Assembly (NCBI GenBank): GCA_037447605.1 | Contig: CM074805.1 | Location: 1,831,361-1,895,360, forward strand | DNA length: 64,000 bases | Reading direction: 5' to 3' | From: Zygnema circumcarinatum SAG 698-1b | Lineage: Eukaryota; Plantae; Zygnematophyceae | Part shown: one piece after another, positions 2,896-59,339 of the stretch | Position numbering within the stretch: position 1 is the first letter of the stretch | How the letters are laid out: the number at the start of each line of letters is the position of its first letter | The notes under the pieces: model-generated | The model's input: only the letters and a program-made list of their open reading frames with translations | What the model was told of the DNA's origin: nothing | Database searches by the model: none | Translations under genes and position numbers: made by a program

Positions 2896-5800
2896 TTAAT
2901 ATGATGCAGGCACAGAAAGCGGATCTGCCGACGAAGCGGAACCGTTTCCTGTCAACAGAGGCACCTGGACATGTGGGAACTCCGCATTACCGCCGAAGAA
3001 TGCACCTTCATTAATCACAATCGCGGCTGCCTTCACCAGCAGGTCTTGCTGTGCAGCATAGAACTTCGCCGACGACTGCCCAGACAATCCCAAATGCAGA
3101 GTCAGGCCGAGTCGGCAACGGCAAGCATTCTACAAAAGCGTCTATAAGTGCATAGCAGAGAAAAGGTTCGAGTGCCTTGTAATACCATGCTTTTGGCGGT
3201 TGCTTTCAGCTCCAGTATGAGGTTGTTGGAGCCGAGAGACTTGAGGTAGCACACGGGTTTACTTATCACGGTGTCGAGAGTATTCTGCTGAAGCATCATC
3301 AGTGTGATCTTTGAAGTGATGGCACCAACTCGCAGAATGTCCTCATTGCGGAGTGCAAAGCTGGCTTCAAGATTACGATGAGTGGCTCTTGACATGTTGG
3401 TGATTACCTGCATCAGAAGATAAAATCTTTAGCACTTTATGTTGTCTTTCCCAAAATCAATCTCCCCAAAAAACCATAAGCAAATATTGCGAAATGTTTT
3501 CCTGCAGTTCCCGTCAACAACAAGCCCCTAAAATTCCCTGCTGCACCCGTTCAATGAAAATCACCATATCAGGGTAAATCTTGACGCATTCAAAAAGCAA
3601 AAGGACCTCGCGTAAAAAGGTACGAACACTTAGCAGAATCCTTCACTCCTTTACTCACCATATTGGTGAAGACCTGATTAGGCACTGTGATTTGCATCCT
3701 GTCAAATCCCTGCAGCTTGGTCTGAAAGAATCCAATGTCCTGCACTACTCCTGAGAACGACCCTGCCTGCACCACCCAACGCCCCACTTCCCACTCACAT
3801 CCAAACTGACAACCAACATCGCCGGCTTTTCCCTTTAAGCAAGTGAAAGAAATGAAGGCTCCTAGGGAGAAAACAGCAAAGAACAAAATCAAACCAAAAT
3901 CAAAATAAAACAAAAAAAACAAAATAAAAAACAACAAAATCAAAACAAAATCAAAAAAACAAAATCAAGAACAAAATCAGACCTTAATGGTCTCCCCAAT
4001 GACAAAGGGGCGAGTGAGCCACAAAACCAACCCTCCAAAAAAGTTGGTCACCACTTCCTTGGATGCCAAACCGACCGCAAGACCTGCGCATGATCCCTTA
4101 ACAATCTCAGTTTGAGCAGTGTCCAAACTCATCCTCAAAAGCGCAAAAAAGAGCAAAACAGCAGCGATGCTTTTATGAACATGGCGACATGTCATATACT
4201 GTGGCTATCCACTTGCTTAGTTGCCATCCATACCAGTGAATCCTCCAAAGGCAGCAAGAGATCGCAGTGGAACCCCTACACTCTCTGCTGCAGTAAGGAT
4301 TCCCATCACAACAAGAAATGTTGTGCTCAAGCGATCAATGGCAACGAGTCGAGGCTGGACGGAAATCACCCACAGGCAATCAGAGATGTTAGAAGTGTCT
4401 CCAGTGAGGCCGATATTTGCCATATTTAGTTAATAAACATAAAGGGGTTCGTTCCAAGGGAAGATATGCGTTTGTTCACCTTGTCAAGCTTGCTATTCCC
4501 TTCATAGCTCGATAAGATACAACTCTTCCAACCGAAGAGGCACCATGTGAGAGAACCCACAAATGCAACTGTTCGCACTTGCCCCATCAATACATTGTCG
4601 AAGGGAACGCGGACCAAAGGCAGGAAAACCCTCGCCCTGTTGACCATATCCACCAGCCATTCAAACTTAGCTCTCGCTTCTTACAATGGAAGAAGGTGAT
4701 TTGATTCAGAGCTGAAAAGGAGAAACATGGAAGAAGGTTTGTAATTGTGGTTGACTGATTTGGTTGGCCTTTCTACTGATGATATAAAAGTTTCTTTCCA
4801 ATCTTTTGGGGTCGAAATATTACAATCGCGTGATGGCAAGAATAATGGTGAAGAACTTGGTAGGTTCAGCCAGCGCAAAGAAACCCGAACGGGAATACTT
4901 TTCTTCCAATGCCTCATTATCATGCAATGCATATCTGCTCCACATCCTGCAGAGTACAAACTGGAAACACATTACAGGAGTGCAAGGATGCAAAGCAGTA
5001 ACAACGAGAAAAAACAACGCATAGCATACAACCTCATGAATGTCAAGATTAAGTTGCGAACGTTGATTGTTGTCAATTTTCCTGCATCCAAGGAACTGCG
5101 CATCCTTGCAGGCCATTTCCCCACTGACCAAGATCAAAATTGAGAACCCACCGAAAGAGGTGATAGCACATTTTATCCACGTATCGGATGACAGTCAGCG
5201 CAATCGCCAGCAGGAGAGTCTCCCGGACGAAAAGCACTGCCTGCAAGGAGCAACAGTTTGTCGACATGTCAAAGCCCGGTGCATTGTCAAGTAACATCTC
5301 AAAAGCAAAACTCATAAAAAATCTGTTGCACAACATGAGCGCACACTCACTCATCAGAAAAAAAAGGCAATTTCCCACCTCTGTCCATTTTAGCTGAGAG
5401 ATTGCTCAGCTATAAACCAAAAGCTACCTAAAAAACATCAGCCATACCTCTATACCACCACCATAGAGTGGCGGATGAATGTGCTGCATACCCTGGGAAA
5501 TGTAGGCTTCAAGAGCATATAACTCACTGAGCACAGGCAGAAATGCGTGTTCAGACGTCTCGATGCATTCCTTCCAATTTTCTTTCCTCTCAAAAAACAG
5601 CTTAGAAAAGGATTTTCCCCGCAAATCGGTGCACGCAATGGGTGTACTGTACTTTAATGACCGTCTTAAAACAAGGTTTAAGTAATTTACTCAAAAGGTC
5701 CTCCAAGTCGGGACACAGGCTTCTACTCTTTACGCCTCAAAAAATAAAACCACGCTCAAACCCGGATACGAGTGACATATGAGATAACCATATGTCACAT

Positions 5801-6745
5801 CTACATGATGCTGGTCCTTGTGACCAAGGCTGCTAACCAGTGCCTATCAGCTACTTCCCTGCATCATACATCACCAATGCCACACAAATCTTCTCGCCCG
5901 AAAAATCTGCAAAAGCAGTTTCAAGCAGCCCTTTGGACTCCCGCATTGCACCACCACTTCGAATCCTTCTCACCTCAAAGCCGCCAGGCACTCCTAACTT
6001 CACTTGTGCTCCCCATTCAGCCCTCCCTAAAGCAAGCCACTCCGTTCAAAATTCATCTCTCACCAGTGGCTCACAGCTGTGCAGCTTCTGATGCAAGCCT
6101 TCAGGCAGCCAGAAGAGCCAATCTTGCATGTCCGGCTTGCAGGTCGGGCAGGGCGGCTGCAGTTTGTGCCAAATCCAACGGCTGATATTATCCAAGAAGC
6201 TGTCCTCGGTGTTTCCCAGAAACGCGTTGACACTGGACGCGGCGGCGGCTGCTGCTGACGTTGGAGCTGCAGCAGCCTCTGTGGCGAGAGCCCCATGCGC
6301 GCCCGGAACCCCAGATGTTTGGATGGGGGATGCAGCAGCTCTCCGCGTTGAACGTGAATGGAACGACGTCCTTCTTAAGGATAGTAGAGACTTCGGGGTG
6401 AAGGTGGAGCACAGATAAATGCGGCTTTTCTGTAACAAAGGAAGGATCGAAAGTGAGGCATTAGACCTTCATCTATTCCTCTCGGTCTTCCTTCCCTCTC
6501 TCCCTTTGATGCTAGCACGAGAAGCCTCTTTCTACCTCCATCTTTGCAAGAAATAACCCTAAAATGCTCGTGCATTGCACGTGATTGCAAAACTCCGAAT
6601 GTTGCAAGAGCACGCAAGCAGCATTCCATTCCCTTCCAGCTCCACGCACCTTCCGAGAGGCATCGACAGCGACGCCTGCAGCACTCGCCTCCAAGCAGCC
6701 CGAGGCGCGCCCAGCCAGAAGGCGAGAGGAGGCGAGAGCAGCCAT
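2896..6745 (-). CDS. MSL1: MscS-like mechanosensitive ion channel, probably mitochondrial MSL1 type (multi-exon)
   Basis: Exons encode SLAAFGGFTGLAVGLASKEVVTNFFGGLVLWLTRPFVIGETIK, AGSFSGVVQDIGFFQTKL..ITVPNQVFTNMVITNMSRA and FYAAQQDLLVKAAAIV (MscS core). Ala/Ser/Arg-rich presequence MAALASSRLLAGRA from ATG 6745. GT-AG introns. Confidence 0.88.
3880..3976. repeat. Degenerate (CAAAA/CAAAAT)n low-complexity tract in an MSL intron
   Basis: Directly visible repeated caaaat/caaaa units. Confidence 0.8.
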
Positions 6746-6810
6746 GGCCGCTCAGCTGCATGCAAGCGAGGGCCTCCCTCCCTCTCTAAAGGGCTCTCAG
6801 GAAAGAAGAC

Positions 6811-6845
6811 TGCCACGTGTCGCCTTGGCACGCGCGCTGACGTCA
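6811..6845. promoter_or_regulatory. G-box/ABRE (GCCACGTGTC) and C-box (TGACGTCA) upstream of the MSL start
   Basis: CACGTG at 6814-6819 and TGACGTCA at 6838-6845, 70-100 bp upstream of the minus-strand ATG. Confidence 0.45.
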
Positions 6846-8052
6846 TCGAAAGCCCTTCTTCAATCTCCGGGCTACTGCTGACATCACCCATCAAGCGTGT
6901 GATGGTTTTATTGGCTACTTATGCCGTCATCTTAACCTTTTCGGTTTCGTACGGTCACCGAAACTGGGCTTCGACGGAAAGTTCGGGGGGAGAAAAGCTA
7001 TACGTTTTAAACCGGACGACGGTCAACCAGTCGGGTGGCGCCATGTGACGCCAAATTTGTCGTTTACGGACCCTGAGGACCCGCCTTGACTCGGGTTGAA
7101 AAAGTGGGCTCGGCTCCTAGCCGCCCTTGCCCGGGACGATATATTGAACATATCGCCCGGAAAGCTATCGCGATATATTGCGAGACATCGATTTTAGCAT
7201 CGCAGGCGCACCTTCAACGTCTGACGTCCAAAACGATGCTCGAGGGAGTTCAAGCCCCTCTAAAACCCGAAACCTCCGCAAGGCCCCTTCTGGGCACGAA
7301 CATCTCTCATAGGAATTTCCCTGCAGGAACGAACAAGTTGAAAATTTCTGTGTCTAGCTCTTAAGATTGATGAGGGGTTTAGGCACTTCCAAGTGTTTAA
7401 AGTAACTCAGAGTTTCGGAAATGTAGAGGATGTCGGGTTTCCACTCACCCTGCGAGTCCGTACAATATCAGTCAGACAAAGGCAAGCTTCGACTTCGGTA
7501 ACCCCCAACACCCATACAGTGCAAACAATGCAAATCCTACAACCCTTACTTACCACGTAGACATGCTAACATGAAGCCTTAAACCCTGATTTCCACAAAA
7601 CCTGAACCATAATCCCTAAGCATCCCACGATCTCTTCCAAACCCCGTGCGGGACGTGACATGGGCTCCCTCCCTCCCTCCCTCCCTAGACCATGAGGCCG
7701 TGCGCATGACATGGCCATGATGGCCTCATGACTTCATGAGCCACAAGCCGTTCCGTTGACGGCGGGATGTTCGCCGATATGGAAATACCGCCGGTCTGTA
7801 GCCCAAGCAACCTGCCGACCGCCAGACGGCCGACTAGATGCTCGTGGCCCACGCCTCCGTACAGTATGTACATAATTCCATTTGCGACTTCAGACCGAGG
7901 TTCGACGGCAGGCCCTGCATGAATCGCGCGTTTTACGGCCCAAGGACGGTCCGTTTGCGCCGCCCTAATCTCGGAGCGCATCGCAGCCGTCCATTTAACC
8001 CCTTTTTTTGTACTCGTGGAAAAATTCCGTGGCATGTGGCACGTGCCCGCCC

Positions 8053-8126
8053 TACCGTACTGTATCTGCAAACCTACAGTACAGTGTAGTTTCATGCCGT
8101 ACCGTACGGCATGCATACGGACGGTA
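8053..8126. repeat. Nested palindrome cluster just upstream of the telomeric array
   Basis: Perfect inverted repeat CATGCCGTAC-C-GTACGGCATG (8093-8113) inside an imperfect outer pair TACCGTACTGTAT / ATACGGACGGTA. Confidence 0.65.
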
Positions 8127-8167
8127 TGGGCCCTGGCTACCCCTTGGCGTGGGTGCCGGCGGGGGGA

Positions 8168-8497
8168 TTAGGGTTAGGGTTAGGGTTAGGGTTAGGGTTA
8201 GGGTTAGGGTTAGGGTTAGGGTTAGGGTTAGGGTTAGGGTTAGGGTTAGGGTTAGGGTTAGGGTTAGGGTTAGGGTTAGGGTTAGGGTTAGGGTTAGGGT
8301 TAGGGTTAGGGTTAGGGTTAGGGTTAGGGTTAGGGTTAGGGTTAGGGTTAGGGTTAGGGTTAGGGTTAGGGTTAGGGTTAGGGTTAGGGTTAGGGTTAGG
8401 GTTAGGGTTAGGGTTAGGGTTAGGGTTAGGGTTAGGGTTAGGGTTAGGGTTAGGGTTAGGGTTAGGGTTAGGGTTAGGGTTAGGGTTAGGGTTAGGG
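8168..8497 (+). repeat. Interstitial telomeric array (TTAGGG)55, perfect
   Basis: 330 bp of uninterrupted TTAGGG flanked by unique sequence on both sides; ends 50 bp before ATG 8548. Confidence 0.98.
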
Positions 8498-8547
8498 TGG
8501 AGAGGAGAGGAGAGGGGAGGAGAGGGGAGGAGAGGGGAGGGGCAGCC

Positions 8548-11500
8548 ATGGAGGAAGATGATGACTTTGGCGCCCTGTATGAGAATATTGGGGTTGAGGA
8601 GGGCATGGAAGCAGGGGAGGACGAGTTGGATTACGACGACAGGGAGTATGCTGGCTTGCCCGTGGGGGTCTCGGACGACGAGGATGAGGACGAAGAGGAA
8701 GAGATGCTATATGGCACTCCTGCTACAGGCCCTCCCGCTAAGAAGAGCATTCAGCCTACATTTTCCGTATCGACACCGGCATTTGTACAGGCATCTGTGG
8801 CATCGGTGGTAGGAGCAGCAGCTCCAGCAACAGCAGCAGCAGCTCCAGCAATAACAGCAGCAGCTCCATCAATAGCAGCAGCAGCTCCAGCAACAGCAGC
8901 AGCAGCTCCAGCAACAGCAGCAGCAGCTCCAGCAACAGCAGCAGCAGTTCCAGCAACAGCAGCAGCAGCTCCAGCAACAGCAGCAGAAGCTTCAGCAACA
9001 GCAGCAGCAGCTCCAGCAATAGCAGCCGCAGCTCCAGCAACAGCAGCAGCAGCTCCAGCGAAAGCAGCAGCAGCTCCAGCAACAGCAGTTGCATCCACTG
9101 GAGCACAGGATGAGGTGGCTAGGAGCTCAAACCAACAGCCCACCATACGGAGAGGGGAAGTGGAGGATGACGATGGGGAAGAAGATGATCTTTACGCGCA
9201 GCTCTACGGTGAGGCTCCTTCCTCAACTGCTACCAAGACAGAAACAGCCATGGCCGTCTATACTCTATCTTCTTCGCCTTCTCCACATTTAAGTGCCCCT
9301 GGGGTCGTCTCAGAACTTTTCTGGCCCACCAGGGCAGCATATACAGAACAAAATGCTGAAACCAGCAAGTTGCCTGGCGGCGAGAAAGTAGATTTTGCGA
9401 GAACGGCATGCGAGGCAGAAATAAGAGGCGTAGGGGGGATAGAAGCAGACGCAGCTGATAGGATTTGCAACAGGGAAGTGCAAAATGAATTCGAAACGTC
9501 TCCAAGTGGTATTGAGAATTCATTTGGGGGTAATACGACGCTTCCAGGTGCTGTTGCATCTCATAAGGACACACGAGAAGTTTTAATCGGTGAGCATCTA
9601 TTTAGAGTTGCTCGAGGTGAAAGGGAAGCAACTACAGATGGTGGATCCACACAAGAGAAGTACGAACAAAGAGCGGCTGATCAAGCTCTTGGTCAGGGTG
9701 CGCAAAGAAGTGAATTCTGCCTAAACGGTGAAAGCCAGAAAAAAAGTTTAGGAGAGGTAGTGGAAGCAACTTCGCTCTACACCCAAGATGCACTTGGAGT
9801 AAATGAAACTGTCCCAATTGGTAAAATTCGTACTGCAGACGAAGGATCATTTCAAGTCGGGCGAACTGACATATCAAGAGAAAACAATGATTCAACTTTG
9901 ACGGGTGTTGTCAGGCAGTTTAACAGTGTACATGTTAGGCAGGATGGACTGAAAGGTGAATGGTACGACAGCAATGTGGAAGACGTTGTTGAGGGCTCGG
10001 GCAAAGGAGTCCAGGAAAGTGGGATTCATGGTGAAACTGAAACCCAGGTTGACGTTGTCGGCCATACAGCAGGGAGCAGCAATGGTGTAGGTGAAGGTGG
10101 ATATGGAGTGGATCTTGAAGGACCTGGACCTGCAGGTTTAGTTGTTGAAACCGGTAGTGCTGGTCCAACTTCTGTGGAGGAATTGATTGAACAGGCGCAA
10201 GAGGGTGACATGGATTGGGTTTCGGGGTTGAAAGGAGATGGGATTGAGGCTGCAGTGGAAGACGAAGACGAGAGCGGGAGTGAGGACGACCTCCAAATTG
10301 TATTGAATGAGGAGCCTCCCCTATCATACGCCGGACGTGGCCCTTATCAGCAGATGGCCCAGCAGCAGCATCTCCACAGTGCAGCTCTGCTTGGAAGTGT
10401 GAATGAAGCGAGCGGTTTTGTGGAAGGTGAGGAGTTTGAGGACAGTGAAGATGACGACGATTTGGTTATTGTGGCCGATGAGCCACTGGCAGACGGTGAC
10501 GACCCGTGGGCCCGCAGCCAACCCCTTACAGAATCTGGCGCCGGTGGAGCTCCTAGCATGCCTTCTCTAGAGGGTGAGCAAGTTGGTGCCGTCCAAGGGG
10601 TTGCTGAACAGCGATCAACTGCATTGCTAGGGCAACCTCCAGTAGGTCCTCGGGGCGCCTTATCCGGAGCCCGCGTTGCAGGCCAGCCTGTTGTTTCTCC
10701 GTACATGAAGGTGAGGCCACAGGATTGGAATTTCGCTAATTGTAGGTTCTCAGATTTTTCTTCCAGACTCCATGAGCGCATTTTTTTGGCTTAAGCGTGG
10801 TTATTTAATGGAACTTTCTTCTCGATTTGATTAGTGCAGTAATGTCACTGTTGTTCAAAGGCCAAAAATCAGTCGGATTTCGGTGTTGCTGAATTGGCTT
10901 TCTGTATTCTTCTGGAATAAAGAAGGCTAATGGCCCAAAAAGTGTTCATCAATAACCTCCAATATTTATTTGCAAGGTTTTTTGTTTGTTACTCTTGCTC
11001 TTATCGTTGCTGTGTTAACGTGGCATGGGTGGGTTGTGAACAGTATGTGCGGCCAGGTGCCGCTAATGCCTTGACTGGCGTTACTGCCACAACAGGGCCA
11101 GCAGGTCCTGCTATTGGTGGAGCCACAGGAGAGACTGGTCCAGGCACTGCCGGTCGTTCCTCGGGTGCTGGACGCGGTGACTGGGCATGGGGTTCAGCGC
11201 AGCAGCGGCATGCGTGGGGAGGAGAGACCGTCCGGGAGTTTATGCTTCCACCGAACAAGTGAGTTGTAGAACTTTTGTATAAATGGCTGGCCTAGATTGC
11301 ATCCACTTGCCAGCATTTGGCGGCCCTCTCGGTCCCAGGCGAAGGATGCATTCAATACCTAGCTATCTGGTCTTACAGAACATGTTAGCTGAAGTTGCTG
11401 CAAAGAGGAAGTGGTACAGTTGTTAATGGCAGGAACCTTTTGTTGTCGTTTTTCTTGACGTTGGAAAAATTTGAGAGTCTTTTTTGTACGTTGTATCCAA

Positions 11501-14500
11501 TTCCATTTATTCACTTTCAGTTCAAACACTCGCGGATTCATCCTCTTAGTATATTAAGACCTGTTTGGGATGATGGATCTACATTTGCCCAAGCTTATGC
11601 AAGGAACTAAAGGCTTTCTATACTGAGTTTGTGACACTGAGTGTGATGGAATTGTCCAAAAGCTTGTTTTCTCGTTGCTTATTCCAATTTGCTCATTGGA
11701 ATCGCTTTCAAGTCCTTCAATTCTAGAGAAAGTTTTGCCACCATTTCGGAAAGTGGAATTTGTAGTTCCTATCAGATGTGAATATTTCCTGACATGTCAG
11801 TTGTCATATACTTGCTGGCCCTGTTACAGGTCCTTGTTCGAGGTGAACGTTGATGAATTGGAAGATAAGCCATGGCGTCGACCACAAGCAGATGTCTCTG
11901 ATTACTTTAATTTCGACCTCAATGAGAGCTCCTGGCAGGAGTATTGTCGTCAACTGGTAAGCATCAAATAGCCTGCCCACCTTTTGCTAAACCAATGTGT
12001 GTAGTCTGGTGTTTCAGTTTTCGACATGAAACATGAGATATATACAGCCACGTCTGGTGTAGGGAAGGTTGAATGTTTAGCATTTTCTGTTTCTGAAATT
12101 TGAGGAACTTCGCACTATCCTGGTTCCCAAGTCGTGCATTTTTCCCAAAGCCTGCGATGAGAACTCCAATGCACCTCATTTTGGAAGAGCGAAGGCAAGT
12201 TTTGTCTTTAAATGTCGCAAAGAATGATGCCAATTGAACAGGAAAGACCTCTACTTGCGATGCCAGAAAGTCTCTCGACTGTGTCTTTGGATACTCGTTA
12301 GAGAGGCAACATTAATGTGATCACCCTTCTGAAGGTGGTTTTGAAGTCTGATTCCCATCATAGTAGCGCTACTTGACGGTATCATGTCGTTTCTGAAGTT
12401 CGCGAGAGATATGGTCAAGTTTCAATTAGAATCTGTGTCTGTATTCACCAAATTGTCGGAATGGACTTGGCGGGGTCTCTGCAGGCACAGCTCAAGGAAG
12501 AAGCTACTGGGAGCAAGATACGGGTGTATGAGAGCAACAGAGGCGAGCAGGTATCTTTTTTTACTTGTAGGAATATACAACGGCACTTGTTTGTCTGTCT
12601 TTTCTTTTTGCATCAGTAGCAAGAAGTATTGAAGAGCAGTGTGACAACAGCTGCGGCAATGCTCTCGGCTTATCGTTGGAGGTGCTGACCCTATTTCACG
12701 GAGCACTGTTTACCGCTCATATTAGGGAATGCACACTGTACTTCAAAGCAAATTTGCAAAAGAAGGTTGTGAGATTCTGCCTCCAACCCAGTTGCTATTT
12801 ATCCAGCTTAGTTATCTAAAGCGTAATTCGGGAGCTGTTCCGAACAGGAGTATGATCCCGAGCTTCCCCCGGAGTTGGCTGCTGCTGCCGGCATTCCTGA
12901 ACGTGGGGGGCCTTCGACCGATGGCGGGGGGAAAGGTCGAGGGGGGCAGGTGACTTTCCGCTTCTTGACCATCGTTGGTCAAGGTCTCATTGCAGACCTT
13001 TGTTCAACACATGGAATTTTTTTTCTTTTTTGGCAACCTTGAATGATATTGTCCCTGGTTTACAGTGTGCAACATGTCATGAGGGAACTATCTAGCACAT
13101 AAATCTGTCAGTCAGACTCATGTGAAGGTCGAACGTGCTTCTTGTTTTGAAGTACCCTGAATACATACAGACGCTGCAAAACCCTGATTAACGCTCATGT
13201 TCAAGTCTATTTACTTCTCTTTTTAAACTACATCTTCCTATTCGGAGATTGTTCTTGAGAGGGGATGCGGAAAGGCAATGGTATGCAAGGAGATGCAGGG
13301 GAAGACATGATGATAGCCTTAAGGAATCACGTCACTTATTGACTGATTGATTGAAAGTCTAGATGCAGTGTTGCTTGTTTTTGTCTAGTTTTCATGTCCG
13401 TCAGACTAATTGAAGAGCATTTGTGGCTTCAATGTTTGTGGTAAACTTTTTTGTCAAGTTAGAACTAGTTATGGCAAGTGAACTGAGCACATGTCATGCG
13501 AGTTGTTTACCCTAAAAACACTGATGGTACAGTAGATCGTTGACCTCCTTTGACTCGTTGTCATGGCTACAGGTTCAACTGCTCGGACGTGCCATTCAAG
13601 TTGAGGGTGGAGGAGGAGAGCGTCGGCCTTCAAGTGATATGCGCAGACAGAGACCTTTGGATCCTGATGTCATCATCGAGGTAATTTAGTGTCTGACTGA
13701 AAGTGTATAAGGTGTTGCCTGGCTAGGAATGTTCCAAATGAATAGATGCTGTCCTAAGTAGCACCGGGCATCAAATAATTCTCGGCGCTAACCGTTAGAT
13801 AGGCGAGTGTGACCTGTTCCCATATCTAACTAGCTGTAGAGCACCATGCCATTTCTGGATAGGTTCACTTTTGCTCATCCATGACAATGGCCACGTTTAA
13901 AGGGGACTCCCATTCTCTTTTTTTTTTTTTTTTTTAATGCCGAGCACCATACTTCACCTTGTGGGAAGGACCAATCTGCGTGCTGAAAGAAAGAATCTCG
14001 TTCGGTGTTTACTGCCAAGGAATTGACAAAGCATTTTTGGATGCAGATCAAGCTGCTAAATCTCGACGATTTTGGGAACCCCCTACCAGAACCAGCAGCT
14101 CCTTCTCCGGATAACAAAAAGACACCGAAACTAAACCAAAAGTCCGAGGGTACTCAAGGAGATTCCGGAGTTATGTTAGAAGGAACAGCAGCAGACACGC
14201 GAATGAAAGACGACCTTCACATGAAGGAGGAGACCTTGCAACAGTCACATGGGGTCCGATCTCGCCAGTCCACCCCGCAACGGAGCGGTATGAGTCGACC
14301 GCCATGGCCTGTTGGCGAAGAGGGTGGACCTCTCCCTAACGGCATGTGGGAGAGAATGCCGCTTTTGCCGGGTCCGGGAATGCGGAGAGGAGGAGGACCC
14401 ATCCGAGGTGGCCTTCCTATGGGGCCGGGGCATGCCATGGGTCCAATGGCTGGAATTGGGCCTATGGGGCTTCAAGGGCCAATTGGACCAGGCCATATAT

Positions 14501-18878: not shown

Positions 18879-18887
18879 GTTAGGGTT
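18879..18887 (+). promoter_or_regulatory. Telo-box-like GTTAGGGTT upstream of RIN2
   Basis: Telomere-like motif in the GC-rich, GA-rich region preceding the gene. Confidence 0.4.
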
Positions 18888-19249
18888 CGAGATAGCCCGC
18901 TCGGCAGGCGGAGAGGAGAGGAGCAGCAAGGAGGCATTTTTGGCCATGGCGTCGACACAGCGCATCTGTCTGCCGCTCGGCGGCCATCGTCGCATGTCCT
19001 GCATATCTCAAGCACATGCCGGCCGCTTTTGAAGAGCATGCGGTGCTCATTGCCGCTTTTTTATGTACGTCAAATGGGTAGAGTGTGGAGTACATTTGTT
19101 CATGTAACGTTGCTCCTGGAGCAGCTGAAAAGAAGGATGGTAAAGGGAGCAGGGAGGCACCATGTGCTAATTCATTTCTTTCGGGTGCAAATGTTGGAGA
19201 GGCCCTTAGAGCGTGCTGGCTGATGCTGAATTCTGTGGCAAACGGCAGG

Positions 19250-24753: not shown

Positions 24754-24999
24754 GACACGTGGCGGTTCCGCGACACATGGCCGGGCATGCCCATGGGGTG
24801 GGCGGGACTCATCGATGGTAGTAAAAATCACTGAACCAATCGCAGCCTACCATGTCAGCAACAGTGTACACGTGTACGGCTATGATTGGTTATCGTTCAA
24901 TATGGGGCACCTTGGAGGGAGGGCTGGCATACCGTGTGCCGTCGTAGTTCCGTGTTGGCGCTGAGCTCTCGAGCAGCTTCTGGCTGCAAATTAGGGTTT
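24754..24999 (+). promoter_or_regulatory. Promoter of the RBM26/27-like gene: G-box/ABRE and telo-box
   Basis: GACACGTGGC at 24754-24763; TTAGGGTTT (reverse complement of the telo-box AAACCCTAA) at 24991-24999. Confidence 0.5.
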
Positions 25000-25016: not shown

Positions 25017-28000
25017 ATGGCGGAAGCCATGGCGGGCTCGCAAGGCGAGCCGACTGAGCTGTAGGAAGGTTTGGCTGTCTCCTGCTGCTGTATTGGTGCA
25101 GAAAGCGCGGGGCGAGACCCTTCAGGGGGCGGCACTTGGGGTTGAGTGACAGGCGAGGAAGGTTGACAAGGGAAATGAGAGCTGGAGACGCGCAGATGCA
25201 GCCGTTGGACGAGTTTCTTCTCAAGGAGTTGGAGCCAATGTAAGTCTCGCTGGAGCCGCATGAAACACACTTTTGTTGTTGGAGCGAGCCTTGTTCGGTT
25301 CAATTCTGGTACCATAGCCCTCATACTTTTTCGTTTTAGGGTAGAACAGCAAAGAATCAGTGCATGAAAACTGTATTTCCAACTTCCCTTCTGGCCATGT
25401 TCTTGGTCCTGTGGTTAGAAGTAAAGTTATCCATTATTTCGCACATAATGAGTGCCTTGCTGAAGTGGGTATTTTCCCAAGCGACCTGGCAAAAGCCGTG
25501 CGAGATTTTCTTACTTGCGACATCTTGAGCTTATACTCCCGGCACATGATGCCTGAAGGGTTTTATGGATGCCTTTATTTTGTCAAGGGGTTTGAAGCTT
25601 CCTCATGGCATTGGAGGTGCAGATCCGAAGCTGATCCCAAACTGCTTTCAAGTTATGTTGCTGCTCTTTTGAGGAACGACAAGCCGCAGAAGGAGCTGAA
25701 GCAACTATGCCTGGACCAGCTGGTGGACTTCCTTGGAGGAGGTCAGTAGGCACATCTTCTTCCAAGAGTTTTTCTACCAGAGGAACTTAAGCCTTGTTCT
25801 TTAGGAGTTTTAAAACTTTGTCTTGTATGCTAGCCACGCTAAAGAACGGCAATGCAAAGAACCGCAACCTGCTGTTTGTAAGATGACGAAAGGGATGTTG
25901 TTCAGTTCTATTAGCCCTCTTATAACACTCCTGTCGCTGGAATCTATGCGATCAAATAACCACTCGGTGGAGGACCTCGTGGATAAGTTGCCGACATATG
26001 CGTTTGAATGTAGCACAATGGAACTCTAGACGCTTGGAGGTTTGTTTAATTGTAGGCGGACACATGCCGTTGGCATCATACGTTTCAAGGGAATAGTGGA
26101 ATGGACGGAAGGTGTTGGGCAAAGTGCTGAGAACAATGAAAGGTTATCATGGGAAGAATAGGCTATGAGTAGGCTATAAATTCAAATGGCATGTCAGAAC
26201 TTGGCGCGCCTTGATTGCATTTGGAGGAATCCTGGGTTTATTTTGTCAAGTCAGGGTATTCCTTGGCACCTTATTAACGTTTCTTCTGTTGGCCCCTTAT
26301 GCAGCTACTGGAAATTTCGTGAACAAACTTTTTGTGGCGCTTGAAAACGGTTCTGTCAGAGTTTCAGAAGCAGAACCTGGAGAACGTGTGCTGACAACTG
26401 CAGATGGTGAAGCTCACGAAGTTCGGAGCATTGAAAATGGAGCTGCAGCACAGGAAGAGGAGGCAGCCTTGGAGGCAGCAGCAGCTTCAGCTGGTCTACG
26501 CAGCACACCCTCTCAAACAGGACAAGTCTCTGATAGGAGCAGAGAGATAGACAGACCGCAAGTTGATGGAACAGCAAAAAGGGAGAACGGGACTGGAAGG
26601 ATAGATGAGGAGGAAGGAGGAGAGCAGGAAAGCAGTGATGAGGATGACGATCGCAACCACAAGCATCGCAGGCGAGGCCTATCTTCTCGATTGACAGACA
26701 GGAAAACGGACGATAGGTTGAAAGGTGATGGAGCCGGCAGAGGAGCTGAGGCTAGGGAGGAACACGGTTACCTTCAAACTGACGATGATAAGGGAACTGG
26801 AAAAGGCCTCATTCGTCCTGGAGGAGATATGCGGCGTACGATTGCTCGACTGCCTCGTGAATTTCCTGGCAGGCCCGAGAGGCGGGACCATTTTGTTGCT
26901 CGTTTTGGGCCGGCTGTGGCAGGCCGATTCCCACTAGATGGGGCCCAACGAGGAAGTCTCCCTGGAGGTCGCCAGCCTCCATTTCGGGAAGGATTTGAGG
27001 GCCCAAATGGAAATTTGATTCCAAGGGGCATGAGTCATGGACGAGGTGTAGTCGATGGTTGGGGTCATAATGCGTTATCTGACCGACATTTTGGCACTCC
27101 TCCTTTTGGAGATGGGCAGCCGCCGCTTGTAGGACTCCCTGCAGGAGGTCCCGGCTTTTTCCCTTCCCGAGGAATTGCACGCGCTGGGGTTGGTGCTGGC
27201 CCTCAAACAAACAGTCCTTGGGGAGGGTTTGGGCCTATGTCGGTTAGACCTAATCCCATGGAACGAGGGCCACCCGTTGGCCCAGGAGTGCCGGTAGTAG
27301 TTGGTGGCATGGTTCAAGGGGCACCCCCACCAATGGGAATAGGTCTGAGGGTGCTCCGGATGCGATGCCCCGATTTTGAAGAGAGGGGATTCTGCTTGCG
27401 AGGGGACCTCTGCCCAATGGATCATGGAGCCGATCGTATCGTGCTAGAGGACATAAAGGTTTGTCACGGACACCTCCATTTGCATTACAAGATGATCATC
27501 AAGACTGCTGTATGCTTATTAATAGTATCTGAAGTTTATGTCTGGTGTAGTGCGATTAACGCACTGTAGGTCAGACTCCTTCATAGTGAACGATGTTGCC
27601 TCTATGGTATTTGGAGCCTGTGGCTTTGGTGATGAAAGACTGTGTATTCTTCTCAGGACACGACTGCCCCGGTGAATCGTCAGGTTTACCCTCTACTCAT
27701 AAATAGGACCTTGACTATCACATTGGAATGTTCGTGAGCTATGCCAGCTTAGTATAGTCAATTCACGGCCGTTTTGCAGCCTGTAATCACCCGTGACTTG
27801 GCTAAAATGCTGCATCTTCTGGCAATCTTTAGGAGTTTAGCTGTTTTTAATTTCTGTGGATGTATGGAACCTTTTTTTGGTGTATTACCATGAACTAACT
27901 ATGACTAGAAATTGGACCACTTTGCATGCTTCCCTCGATAGTTTTCACCCTCTTTTGTAGTCTTTTCTCTTCTGAACAGATAGTAGGGGTGTTGATTCCT

Positions 28001-31000
28001 ATTCTAAGCTGGATGTCACTGATAAGGAGGAACTTTTGGATGCAGCATTTGCAACAGTTGAATCTTCCACTTCCGTCTAACCGGTCAATAGGGCCTGCTA
28101 CGATTCCTGCAAATACTCCATCGTTGCCTGGACATGGAAGGCGTAACCGCATTGAAAGAGAAAGAGACAGAAACCTTGATGCTGAACGTCTTTCTCCAGA
28201 ACCGTCCTTGGTTTCTTCTCCTCGGGGCACTCGCGGGCTTCCCGATGATGCAGCAGAAGCTAATGGGGAAGAAAGTGTTCGGGGAGAACACTATGATCCG
28301 GATCAGCTTCTTTGGTCTAGAGATCGCTTGCGACCAAAACCAGCACCGGGTTCAGGAAGACTTGCCTCTTTGATGCGACCTCGGCAAGAAGACCGGTTCA
28401 AAAATGGGGAAGAGGGAGAAGATCAACGAAAACAGCGGATAGGATTGACTTTAGAGGGTGGAGGAAGGCCAGCTTCTGAAGATGCCCAGGCAGCTTCTTT
28501 AGGGCAAAACCCAGGAATTGGAAGTGTATGGGATAGAATTGGACCCCCAGCTGAAAAAGCTGGAGGTTCTCTCACACCAGTATCAACGGTTGACTTGGGG
28601 CCGCGGGGGATAAAGCGTGGGAGAAGCGAACTTATCGATGGAATAAAGTGGGAGGTTGAACCTGAAAGGGTTGTGGCTGCAGGATTGGCAGGAAACGAAG
28701 GGATAGCTTCTAAGCAGGTAGCACCTGGACAGGGTAGGGGACGGGGCGGAAGTGAAGCACAAGGAGGAAGAGGAGGGGGGCGGTGGGGAAATGGAGTTGA
28801 GAAAGAGCGTGCTCAACGGACCCTGTTTGTCAGAAACTTACCAACAGATTTGCAAAACGCAGACGAATTATTGACTCGGCATTTTTGCAAATTTGGCCAA
28901 GTAGTTAGTGTGAAGATCACCCAATCCCGTGATAGAGCCTTTGTGCAGTTTGCAAACAAGCCAGATGCTGAATCAGCTTTAGCTGCACCCGAGGCAGTCA
29001 TGGGTAATCGCTTTATCACCCTCCATTGGGCATTTCATGATAACTATCCTGAGCATAGTGCCGGTTCTTGGGGGGCCCCAAATCAATTAGCTCCTATAGC
29101 CATTCCTAATTTCAAAGGAGGAAATTCACAAGCGAACTTTAGTCCGTCAATTGGGGCTCAACTTAATCGGAGTCCGAGTGCTGCTGCTGGCAGCACTGGA
29201 GAAACTACTGTAGCAACCTCTGCCAGCACAACAGCTCAAGTCGCAGCTGTTGCACAGGCAAAGCAGAGAGAAAAACTGGAACTTCTGAAAGAGATTCAGC
29301 GCAAGAAAGAAGCATTGTTGAGGGCGCAAATTGAGCAGCGAAAGAAGATGCTGGAAAGATTGGCCAAATCCAAACAGCAGGTAACACTTAAAGTGATTGT
29401 GGAAATGAAGCTATGGTCGTTTGTGGGATAATCTTTTCAGAAGCAGTGGGGGATTTATTTGAGTAACTCTCCAGACCATTCCCGATCCAGATTTCATTTG
29501 TTGTGGCAAACCATTCAGTGTCACAAGCAATAATATTTCACTAAAAAGTCAATCCATTCCCGATCTATCATTAGAAATTACAGGTCATACTTTTTTTGTT
29601 GATTCTTGTGGGTGCTGTAAAGTAAGTGCCATAGCTACTTGGATCAACCATATTTTCCCAGGTTAGGTTCTCTAATGATGTTAGCCAATATTCGTTATCA
29701 GAGCTAATTTCAGGGGAAGGGAACAATGCTGGTGCAACAGGGAAGTTCTGAGCAGAATTCTTTACCCGCAGCCACGGATGCTGCTGCATGTGGAAATTCT
29801 TCATCCCCTGCTGATGGTGAAACACCACTTAAGGGAGGCCGTACTAGTGATAGCGGGGCCACTACCCCACATTCTTGGAACTCCTCAAAACCCACCACTC
29901 AGTCCTCTCGTACGTTAGGTCAAGGAGAAGTAGCAGAAGAGGCCTCTGGTAGTGTGCCCCATTCTGGCTCAAATGCAGAGGCTAGCTCGTCTCTCTCTCC
30001 TTATCCTTCCCGGCCCCTTTCAGGAGGGTGGCAGACAGCAAGGGCAGGTGCAGGGGGGGCCATTAGAACTCCGGCTACAACTGGCCACCTGCGCAGTGCA
30101 CCATATCACAGTCCATGGGGACCCGCACGCTACAAGCTTGACAATCGTTCCACTGTTTTGAGAGTTCTTCCACCATTGCCTGCCATAGCTACTGAGGTAA
30201 GTAACTTCGGGCCCTTTTGTCTGTCAGATGCCTGAGATCACTGACAGGTTCTCTCCCGCGAAAGTGTTACCTGCTTGAGATGGCTTGCTTGTTGCATGTG
30301 CGCTGAGTAGTTCACGTTCGTGAACTCCGCATACTGGGATTCTTTGTCCTTTTAGGGCAGGCAACAGTTGCTGTCAAGAGGCACCCTGTTGTTGTGGGCT
30401 CTGCAAATTGCAGTGCATGCGGGTGCTTTTCTTTGTGGCATGTTTGGCGCCCAGTACACAGATATACGTGCAGCATTGTGGACTGCAAAGATTGAATGGC
30501 ATTAATGCATTTCAACTGAAGTTCGATACAGATTCAGCTATTGCCTCTGAGCTTTCCGATCTGCTGGTCTTTGCTGCTGTTTTGATAGGGGGTGTTTTTC
30601 CATGATATTACTTCCGCCGGATAGCAAGCAGGCATCTCGCCAGAGACTGATTATTCCTCTAAATTACTGCTTCCCTCAGCTTATGGAACTTGCTGTCCGT
30701 TTTGTGTGTTCAGCCAGGAGCTCTCTGGGCGCACTTCAGTACTTTTGCAGAAGTGGCAAGCGTGGAGGCAGAGGCTGCTGAACCTGCGGATCAGTCCGCA
30801 TCCACAAGCACAGGAACAGGGGGAGCTGTGAAGGTTACGTTTACGAGCAGAGGAGAAGCGGAGCGTGCAATGGCCCAGGGCAAGATGATGCAGGGAGCAC
30901 AGCTGCAGCTAGCATGGGGCCCGCCCGCAAAGAGCAAATCTTTGGTAGCGGCTGCTTCAACGGCTGGTGGGGCTGACGAAAACACCATTCCAAACCCTGC

Positions 31001-40848: not shown

Positions 40849-43800
40849 TCATGAAACTCGAGCGTACGATGAGGAGCCCCGCATGGAGTGATATGCTCCT
40901 TTCACCTTCTCAACTATGAACGAGGCGCCGCTCTGCAGACAATACCCAACCACACCTTTGAGGGAGGCAGAGGTGGGAGAGGTTTCTCTTTAAGAAGAGG
41001 AACATTCTGGCCACTCACATGGCAGCCAGCCCACGGAAAACAATGAGGGGAAGCTCGCCAAAGGCAACCAGCAAGTCCCAAGCGATCTTTCGTCGTATAA
41101 AATGCTTACTTGAAAGTTGCCCGGTACATTCTGCCAAAACTCGAGATTGGGGATTGCCTGTTTCCAACCACCCGTGCTCGATATCGCATTGAGGTTCCAT
41201 CTGAGGACAAATGCTTGTATGGTGATTGGGACGAGGATGTCATGATCGTAGCTTTTCCCTTGCTATGTATGATCCAACAGGAACACAGGGGGGGGGCTCA
41301 CCTCATAGCCAGAAACTCCTAGGACAAGAGTGCGGTAAGCCAGCCCCACAGCAAAGTAAACAATAGCACCACACAGAAAGCTGCATCAAATAACAGAACA
41401 AGCAATACACGTTATCTTCTGGCCAGATTTCCAGTCGCCGAGCGTGGTAGATGCAGGTTTAGGGTTTTTAGGGTTTTTAGGGTTTTTTTTTTTTTTCAGA
41501 CTTTGCCGAAAACCTCCAGATACAGCAGTGCCTGAGGTTTTTTAAGTAAAACTGATCCCATATTGTAACCCTTTGCCAATTGATGGGAAAGAAACAACGA
41601 TAATGCCATGTATCCAGGCGACCAATCACATGTAGCCCTACCCCTGCTTATCAAGAAAATGTACGGAAGAGTTGCGACATGTGCTACCACTACGGAGGAC
41701 ATGGACGAAGGCAATGGAAGGCCCCTTCCCAGAATGCTTACAGGATAAAGATCAGTCCAACCCAGCCCACTCCATTCCCTCCAGTGGACGTCACAACGGG
41801 GCACCCTGAGGGATGCAACATGCTGGCCACCTGCACAATGCTGCTATGACCATTCAGGTGGGGTGTCCCAAAAACGGCAAAAGTACTTTTGTTTATCTGA
41901 TGGGTGGCTAGTATCAGTGCAAAGGTGATTCAAAAAATAAGAACATGCTAAAAAATGTGGAAGTTACACAGTTTGACAGTCAAGCAGGAAGGTCAAGCTC
42001 AGGTTCCATAGTCATACGTATTGGCAACTTCCTTGTGGCTCCTCTTTCGCATTTTTCGGGGGCTGCAGGATTGAAGACAGGAAGGACATTGTTAATAGAA
42101 GCAAAGAACTGGAAAGCTCAAGGAGAAAGTTAGTTGATGTTGAGAATAGACATACTCATTTGGCCGAAGACAAAAGGTAAGTGGGACAGCAGCTATCTAT
42201 ACGAATACTGAAGAGTCAAAGGTAAGCTATAAAGGAAAAGACTGGACTATCTCTGTAATAGCCGTCAGAAGTTTGCTTGTGCAGTCCTTACCTCTACAAC
42301 CCCGTTAGCTGCACAAAGGACCTTCACTGTCAAGGCCCTGCGCCCTCCTCTTCCCCCATAAGCCACGTCTCTTTAGGATGTAGGAACAAGGACCTGCTGC
42401 ACCCCTCTTGATGTGACTCGCGTGTTGCTACCTGGTGTTGGTTTGACAAACCCCTCCGTTTTCACGCAACCCTTGCTGCTGTAAGTTCACTATCCATTTG
42501 TAATCATATCTGCTGAGCTCTGCACCTCAGGACTCCTGACGGGCAGCCATCAGGGTCGCCAGATCCCAAGGTGACCGCAACACCCAAAGCAGGATTGGCT
42601 TCATCTATGAGAGAATAGTTCGCCGGCCCGGTCCCAGCCACAGTTGTGCACTTCCTGTATCCTGGAGTCAAACAAACAGCAAACAGTGCAAATTAGCTTT
42701 CACTATAAGGTGTAGAAGATGATTTCCGAGTGGCAGACAGGCAAATGGGTCTCAAGCTTCAGGCAGTGGGCGGAACAGTTGAGCACCCATCCTGGTGGAC
42801 GCCTGAAGTGCACTGCACGCCTCTCCACAGTGCTGTTGGCCTCCACAGGACTGCAGGGCGTCCATTGCGCACCCAACCCACCCAAACCACCTTCTCTCCA
42901 CTTTGATAAATTGCCATGACGTAGAGGAACATCTCTTCGGCAGCTGCACCTAACAACATAGTCCTGCGACTTTCTAGCCTGGCAAACCTGCCAAATGCGT
43001 TCTACCTATCCAAACTCAACCTTCTTTTTCAAGCTGCGTCATGGGTACCTAAGCGGTCTATACAGATACCTCAGATTTCTGTGGATTCATGCTTCAAACG
43101 GCAAACGCTTTTGAAAAAATGCTCTGAGGCTTACGTAATGCACAGATTATGGGGGCGTTTACCTGCGGACATAGCTGGCAAGAAGGCGGAACGCTGTTGA
43201 ACTTCATATGCCCGCAGAGCTGCAACCCCCAGGCGAAAGTGCTTCTATATCATGCACGAATCAGAGCGCATAACATTTAACAGATAGGATTTACCAAAGG
43301 ATACATGACAAGGCAAGTGATCGAACAAACTAGGCAAATGTGCACAATCGGTTTATCGAGAATACTCCAGAAACAATCTAAATAAACTCCATCAATAAGG
43401 ATGATTTCAGACCTTTCACCTAACATGGCGAATACTCTAGTGGGCATGAATTAACGGCCAGGAGCATGCCCAAACAGACATGAAGCTACAATATGGCAAT
43501 GCACGCTGGTGTCGAACTTCAATAATGTGCTCAATCCACGGCTCCCACTATAATTTGACGATGACGTGCCCCTGAGACTACAGAAATGGATAAGATTTTA
43601 TTCTACATTCTCTTGACAGGAGAGCTTGTGCTTGCCTGAAACCACAACACAGAGGTTTCGTTGGCATTCTCTCCTCTTTCCACTTGAACTTCGTAGAACC
43701 TGCTCGCAACCGTGAACACAAAGTTAACCAGCAACCAAGCTAGCATCAAGTACACGCCTGCTGCCAGCCTGACACCATCACTTCTCTCCGCTCTTAGCTT

Positions 43801-47982: not shown

Positions 47983-48273
47983 AACCAACCAACCAACCAA
48001 CCAACCAACCAGCACACCAGCACACCAGCACACCAACCAAACAGCCAACCAACCAACCAACCAACTCACCAACCAGCTAGCCAACCAACCCATCAGCCAA
48101 TCAAACAACTAACCAACCACAGCACCAACCAGCGTACCAACCAATCAGCCTACCAACCAACCAACCAGTCAACTACAAGCCAACCAAACTACCTACCAAT
48201 CAACCGACCAACCAGCCAATCAATCAACCAACCAGCCAACTAACTATCAAACCAACCAACCAACCAACCAACC
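47983..48273. repeat. Degenerate (CCAA)n microsatellite upstream of the SYD-like gene
   Basis: ~290 bp of CCAA/CCAG/CTAA variants. Confidence 0.93.

Positions 48274-48595: not shown

Positions 48596-59339
<10,744 letters not shown>

Follow-up and report, generated by a model that had tools for sequence, protein, structure and literature searches.

What is a flawless array of the telomere-type hexamer TTAGGG doing directly in front of the FIP1 gene of the streptophyte alga Zygnema circumcarinatum? Such an array might be a relic of chromosome healing, a product of assembly, a control element of the gene or a microsatellite that grew where it stands. Here, we analysed the 64-kb stretch of contig CM074805.1 that contains it (64,000 nucleotides, hereafter the window), and the array length, its junctions and the transcript structure were all read from the assembly sequence. 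On balance, we consider the array to be, probably, a real interstitial microsatellite of telomere type and of young evolutionary age, situated at the front of a plant-type FIP1 gene, grown by slippage and tolerated as a passenger, and not a dedicated control element.

A perfect TTAGGG array lies between promoter-like elements and the FIP1 start codon

The original prediction described a flawless 330-bp array of 55 TTAGGG units, and both its coordinates and the unit count proved correct in the raw sequence (Table 1). Tandem Repeats Finder delimited the array at 8168-8498, with a period of 6, 55.2 copies, 100% matches and 0 indels. The two-unit 12-mer of TTAGGG occurs 54 times in the whole 64-kb window, always inside the array, while 0.16 occurrences are expected. 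At 331 bp, the array is also the longest perfect repeat of the window, the runner-up (35 bp) being about tenfold shorter. The G-rich strand of (TTAGGG)55 is the FIP1 sense strand, and thus the non-template DNA strand. Both flanks are G-rich as well: on the left, a G6 run is followed by an extra A before the first unit, with no target duplication, and on the right there are GGGG runs. The distance of 50 bp between the end of the array and the FIP1 ATG (8548-8550) was likewise confirmed in the sequence.

Two other repeats were seen in the window. A 290-bp (AACC)n array at 47983-48273 is decayed (69% matches), in contrast to the flawless TTAGGG array, and at 41458-41500 three units of TTTTTAGGG are followed by about 14 T.

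Table 1. Features at and around the TTAGGG array, in window coordinates
Feature	Position	Strand	Basis
MscS-like channel gene, exons	3593..4204	-	Pfam PF00924, E 4.3e-7 and 1.9e-3
Promoter-like cluster: CACGTG	8040-8045	.	consensus match
Promoter-like cluster: GTAC-core inverted repeats	8054-8085	.	consensus match
Promoter-like cluster: perfect 10+1+10 palindrome (21 nt), GTAC-core	8093-8113	.	consensus match
Potential upstream ORF, ATG 8111 (8126 in the same frame), (Leu-Gly)n through the array	8111..8812	+	ORF listing
Promoter-like cluster: TGGGCC	8127-8132	.	consensus match
TTAGGG array, 55 perfect units	8168..8497	+	only such array in the window
Purine-only (GGAGA/GGGAGGAGAG)n tract, four GGGG runs, CAG-CC at its end before the ATG	8498..8547	+	sequence
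FIP1 exon 1, 721 codons, phase 0, GT donor at 10711	8548..10710	+	ORF, alignment to plant-like FIP1
FIP1 exon	11044-11258	+	in frame by GT-AG logic
FIP1 exon with Fip1 motif	11830..11956	+	Pfam PF05182, E 8.6e-19; boundaries by GT-AG logic

Residue 1 of the ORF that opens at 8548 aligns to residue 1 of the first exons of plant-like FIP1 genes found in metagenome contigs, and both sides have a near-identical acidic N-terminus followed by common DDLQIVLN and LVIV motifs. Because the N-terminus aligns from residue 1, we take the ATG at 8548 as the conserved FIP1 start codon; its context is strong, with G at -3 and G at +4 (CAG-CC-ATG-G). Exon 1 further contains an in-frame 21-bp repeat at 8814-9088 (13 copies, 92% identity), which encodes an Ala/Pro/Thr-rich heptad. 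In the searches, the FIP1 exons were used singly and not as a joined spliced protein. The exon-1 protein gave only low-complexity matches, dominated by this heptad, in two protein libraries, and no relative of the C-terminal exon was found among the metagenome contigs. The array was also considered as a coding repeat of FIP1, and this was rejected since there is no FIP1-frame ATG upstream of 8548.

To the left of the array, the region 8040..8132 forms the densest CGTAC/GTACG cluster of the window, with three inverted repeats at 8054-8113. These GTAC-core repeats may serve as a binding site for an SBP-type factor or may fold into a hairpin. The GC skew switches from C-rich to G-rich at about 8000-8100. 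The array is placed between this promoter-like cluster, which is defined by consensus matches, and the conserved FIP1 start codon on the right. The site-II motif TGGGCC that had been singled out just upstream of the array is indeed present, but little can be made of it: the + strand of the 64-kb window has 47 TGGGCY/RGCCCA sites, about one per 1.4 kb, so that a single copy 35 bp upstream of the array means little.

On the far side of the promoter-like cluster, minus-strand ORF segments that represent 5′ exons of the MscS-like gene reach about 6470-6900. As the MscS-like gene and FIP1 occupy opposite strands (minus and plus, respectively), the array is situated in a head-to-head intergenic region of about 1.7 kb. 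Further downstream, a plus-strand gene at 25360-29431 carries a CCCH zinc finger and an RRM (Pfam RRM_1, E 2e-10) and looks RBM26/27-like; the RRM-containing ORF returned one distant relative only from the protein collection.

Position of the array relative to the FIP1 transcript

The 470 bp between 7660 and 8128 contain 17 ATGs, while none is found from 8129 to 8547. The potential upstream ORF that starts at 8111 overlaps the FIP1 ATG out of frame, and the FIP1 frame itself reads Arg-Val through the array. Owing to these upstream ATGs and the overlapping Leu-Gly ORF, an unspliced transcript starting upstream of 8128 would be badly suited to FIP1 translation, and a start in that region would require splicing before FIP1 could be translated. 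It is quite possible, with a likelihood somewhat short of even, that transcription starts in the last repeats or in the purine tract, in which case the array would be promoter DNA just upstream of or at the start. The purine tract itself would constitute the 5′ leader of FIP1 or, alternatively, the 3′ end of an intron within that leader.

The latter would apply if transcription started upstream of the array, and the array together with the purine tract made up most of a 5′-UTR intron that ends at the acceptor CAG at 8543-8545 and leaves the mature mRNA free of repeats. We regard this arrangement as conceivable, though leaning to the unlikely side. The CAG-CC sequence offers an acceptor-like CAG 2 nt before the ATG, a far-upstream start would need splicing in this ATG-rich region, a weak donor (ACG|GTATGG) is present at 8124, and the 3′ end of FIP1 intron 1 is likewise G-rich. 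However, no donor matching at least 7 of the 9 consensus positions was found within 7403-8167, and the 47 nt before the putative acceptor are all purine, with 14 competing AGs and no branch-point-like or pyrimidine element ahead of it. Moreover, a similar GA-rich tract that precedes the ATG near 18946 looks like an exonic leader, which suggests that such tracts can be exonic leaders. It is unlikely that the array is kept in the mature FIP1 leader as UUAGGG repeats.

The array is predicted to form G-quadruplexes

The array had been proposed as a G-quadruplex platform, and predicted folding is in agreement with this. A hypothetical leader RNA (8129-8560) reached -234.5 kcal/mol with G-quadruplexes, about 13 of them, compared with -31.2 kcal/mol without, and the purine tract by itself was predicted to form one G-quadruplex (-28.8 versus -1.3 kcal/mol). 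By these folding predictions, the FIP1 sense strand of the array has a very high potential to form G-quadruplexes.

Repeat expansions in 5′ leaders or first introns are represented by the CGG repeat of FMR1 and the GGGGCC repeat of C9orf72. Like these, the FIP1 array is a G-rich microsatellite that is prone to quadruplexes and R-loops and precedes a gene, and it is likewise translatable in principle into dipeptide repeats (Leu-Gly from the ATG at 8111, and Arg-Val in the FIP1 frame). It differs from them in that it is known here from genome sequence alone.

A variable telomere-like hexamer array at the front of a land-plant-like FIP1 gene

Six AT-rich, land-plant-like metagenome contigs encode a relative of FIP1, in which the Fip1 motif is 58% identical (E 2e-16). 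In these contigs, an (AACCCG)n hexamer microsatellite ends 138 bp before the ATG, with 11 perfect units in contig L004 (L004:2981-3046). No other GC-rich hexamer array was found in 15-20 kb of plant-like contig. The AACCCG unit differs from the telomere C-strand hexamer by one substitution, and the array is followed by a CT-rich leader with two AACCCT cores. Over 11 distinct contigs (L001-L004 and L007-L014, with L004 and L010 being the same contig and counted once), the array length ranges from 5 to 13 units, while the exon-1 protein is identical or near-identical. The units occur as AACCCG, AAACCG, AGCCCG and one AACCCA, and the flanks are almost invariant. Judged from the contig sequences, this variation of 5-13 units between almost constant flanks is the signature of neutral slippage, and it shows that hexamer arrays of telomere-like sequence at the FIP1 front are able to slip freely, as microsatellites do.

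The plant-like array belongs to the same gene as the algal one and lies on the same side of the conserved start codon, and in both cases a homopurine/homopyrimidine leader stands 3′ of the array. In contrast to the algal array, it has only 5-13 units, lies on the opposite strand, keeps a longer distance from the ATG (138 versus 50 bp) and is visibly polymorphic. The parallel is a single post-hoc comparison between arrays of opposite orientation and may be a coincidence; at the sequence level, it would lend weak support to the idea of a telomere-like, slippage-prone seed in FIP1 promoters.

The array contains no exact plant telo-box

The original prediction interpreted the array as possibly an expanded telo-box, and the motif search did not support this. 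The exact plant telo-box AAACCCTA has 0 occurrences in the window, and all five occurrences of TAGGGTTT in the window lie outside the array. When the telo-box core AAACCCTA(A/G) was considered on either strand, the array was found to supply only TAGGGTTA. The plant telo-box (AAACCCTAA), which is TRB-bound and accompanied by site II, resembles the array in being telomere-derived and in lying near the start of a housekeeping gene, and tandem same-orientation copies of it are known (PMC12616469; PMC4778318). However, it consists of 1-2 copies of a 7-mer-type motif, whereas the FIP1 array is a 6-mer repeated 55 times.

Outside the array, telomere-like 8-mers were found at 6 loci, compared with about 1.9 expected in the window, which is a mild enrichment. 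These loci include 18880-18887, 24991-24999 and a minus-strand site at 6555 in the 5′ region of the MscS-like gene. The telomere-like motifs that had been reported upstream of the next two genes are therefore present, but the gene starts assigned to them are putative, since the ATGs that follow, at 18946 and 25017, open frames of only 28 and 15 codons. In the MscS-like 5′ region (6500-6564, minus strand), TTTTAGGGTT is followed by a GA-rich tract, and the order of a telomere-like motif and then a purine tract is alike in this region, at FIP1 and at 18880-18945.

A functional role of the array would require that it was selected as a platform for TRB-type Myb or RAP1 proteins, or as a G-quadruplex or R-loop element that tunes FIP1 transcription or translation, possibly via a TERRA-like leader. 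Telo-boxes act near the start site and in the leader via TRB proteins in Arabidopsis and moss (PMC12616469), typically no more than about 50 bp from the transcription start or in the 5′ UTR, which would correspond to the position of the array, and tandem same-orientation telo-boxes are present in 146 Arabidopsis upstream regions, with stronger co-expression (PMC4778318). The mild enrichment of telomere-like 8-mers in the window, the hexamer array and AACCCT cores at the plant FIP1 front, and the quadruplexes predicted in the leader are consistent with such a role as well. Nevertheless, we consider it distinctly unlikely, as the array is without an exact telo-box, the length of the plant array varies freely between samples in the manner of a neutral microsatellite, and a leader with 13 G-quadruplexes should be detrimental to the translation of an essential housekeeping gene.

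Replication slippage would account for the growth of the array

The favoured reading, a slippage-grown passenger, would begin with a short telomere-like seed in a FIP1 leader that was already G/purine-rich. This seed would have been extended to 55 units by replication slippage, and the grown array would have been tolerated without taking on a dedicated role in FIP1 control. It has been reported that, in an intron reporter in yeast, (TTAGGG)n tracts grow longer through replication slippage (PMC6410037), and that telomerase of Zygnematophyceae makes the 7-mer TTTAGGG, while that of Klebsormidium makes an 8-mer (PMC3622300). Slippage is favoured over a telomerase scar because it is documented in yeast and because the telomerase tested in Zygnematophyceae makes a 7-mer. 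A literature review of telomere units gives no streptophyte alga with TTAGGG at its chromosome ends (PMC7046594), and our literature search did not bring up any streptophyte alga for which such arrays have been described. The earlier proposal, that a telo-box was expanded by telomerase healing or slippage, is thus retained in part: slippage of a telomere-like seed is reasonable and agrees with the variable plant-like FIP1 array, while the exact telo-box is missing.

The array is made of tandem exact telomere-type units, is non-terminal and has unique flanks, as do the short interstitial telomeric sequences (s-ITS) of vertebrates and some plants, with which it also shares the proximity to a gene. 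Such tracts tend to slip, are unstable and can be bound by telomere proteins (PMC6410037). In comparison with s-ITS, the FIP1 array is long, with its 55 flawless units, and stands only 50 bp from a start codon. Its perfect purity over 331 bp could alternatively result from active maintenance, very recent telomerase synthesis or smoothing by the assembler.

A telomerase scar would have arisen if telomerase had added repeats at a double-strand break in the G-rich FIP1 leader and the ends had later been rejoined, with a pure stretch of the species' own telomere unit staying behind. The purity of the array and the G-rich flanks on both sides would fit such an event, and for s-ITS of other organisms an origin in break-related events and rearrangements has been discussed (PMC6410037). 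However, the repeat made by the tested telomerases is a 7-mer or an 8-mer (PMC3622300), at the left junction the G-run is separated from the first unit by the extra A, and no target duplication was found, which together make a telomerase scar very unlikely.

As for the assembly, the sole gap of the window consists of 10 N at 53824-53833, inside a T-run (T27, 10 N, T27; 53797-53860), and no N or gap lies within 45 kb of the array. The array adjoins no contig end, gap or subtelomeric repeats, and it has unique genes and promoter-like sequence on both sides; with no gap nearby and unique genes on both flanks, a misjoin is unlikely. An artefact, in which a short true telomere from the end of one contig was fused to a contig starting 50 bp ahead of FIP1, or in which the assembler generated a false copy number, would be in line with the orientation of the array (that of a right-hand chromosome end), its plausible length for an algal telomere (about 330 bp) and the existence of a gap elsewhere in the assembly, but it is at best a very slight prospect, as the junctions are without N nearby, the join would need a chance placement exactly between the promoter-like cluster and the conserved start codon, and the neighbours form a sensible head-to-head gene pair. 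A transposon-borne array was considered as well and rejected, since there are no element features and no repeated flanks.

Implications of the array for FIP1 and for algal promoters

If the array is only a passenger, as we favour, it would show how far a pure G-rich microsatellite can grow beside an essential gene without destroying that gene, and it would serve as a convenient marker of length polymorphism. Transcripts starting upstream of 8111, if they exist, would contain an upstream ORF in which the array encodes a Leu-Gly dipeptide repeat. A broader proposal is that sense-polarised hexamer arrays upstream of start codons form a genome-wide class of promoter or leader elements in this alga, read by TRB/RAP1 or acting via G-quadruplexes and R-loops, and derived from one telomere-like promoter seed, of which the short variable array in the land-plant FIP1 front would be a remnant; we hold this to be quite improbable. 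Should telomere proteins prove to bind such arrays, or should the arrays influence where transcription begins across the genome, the short telo-boxes known from land plants would be connected with long telomere-type arrays in an algal relative, and quadruplex-rich leaders could be studied in a natural system.
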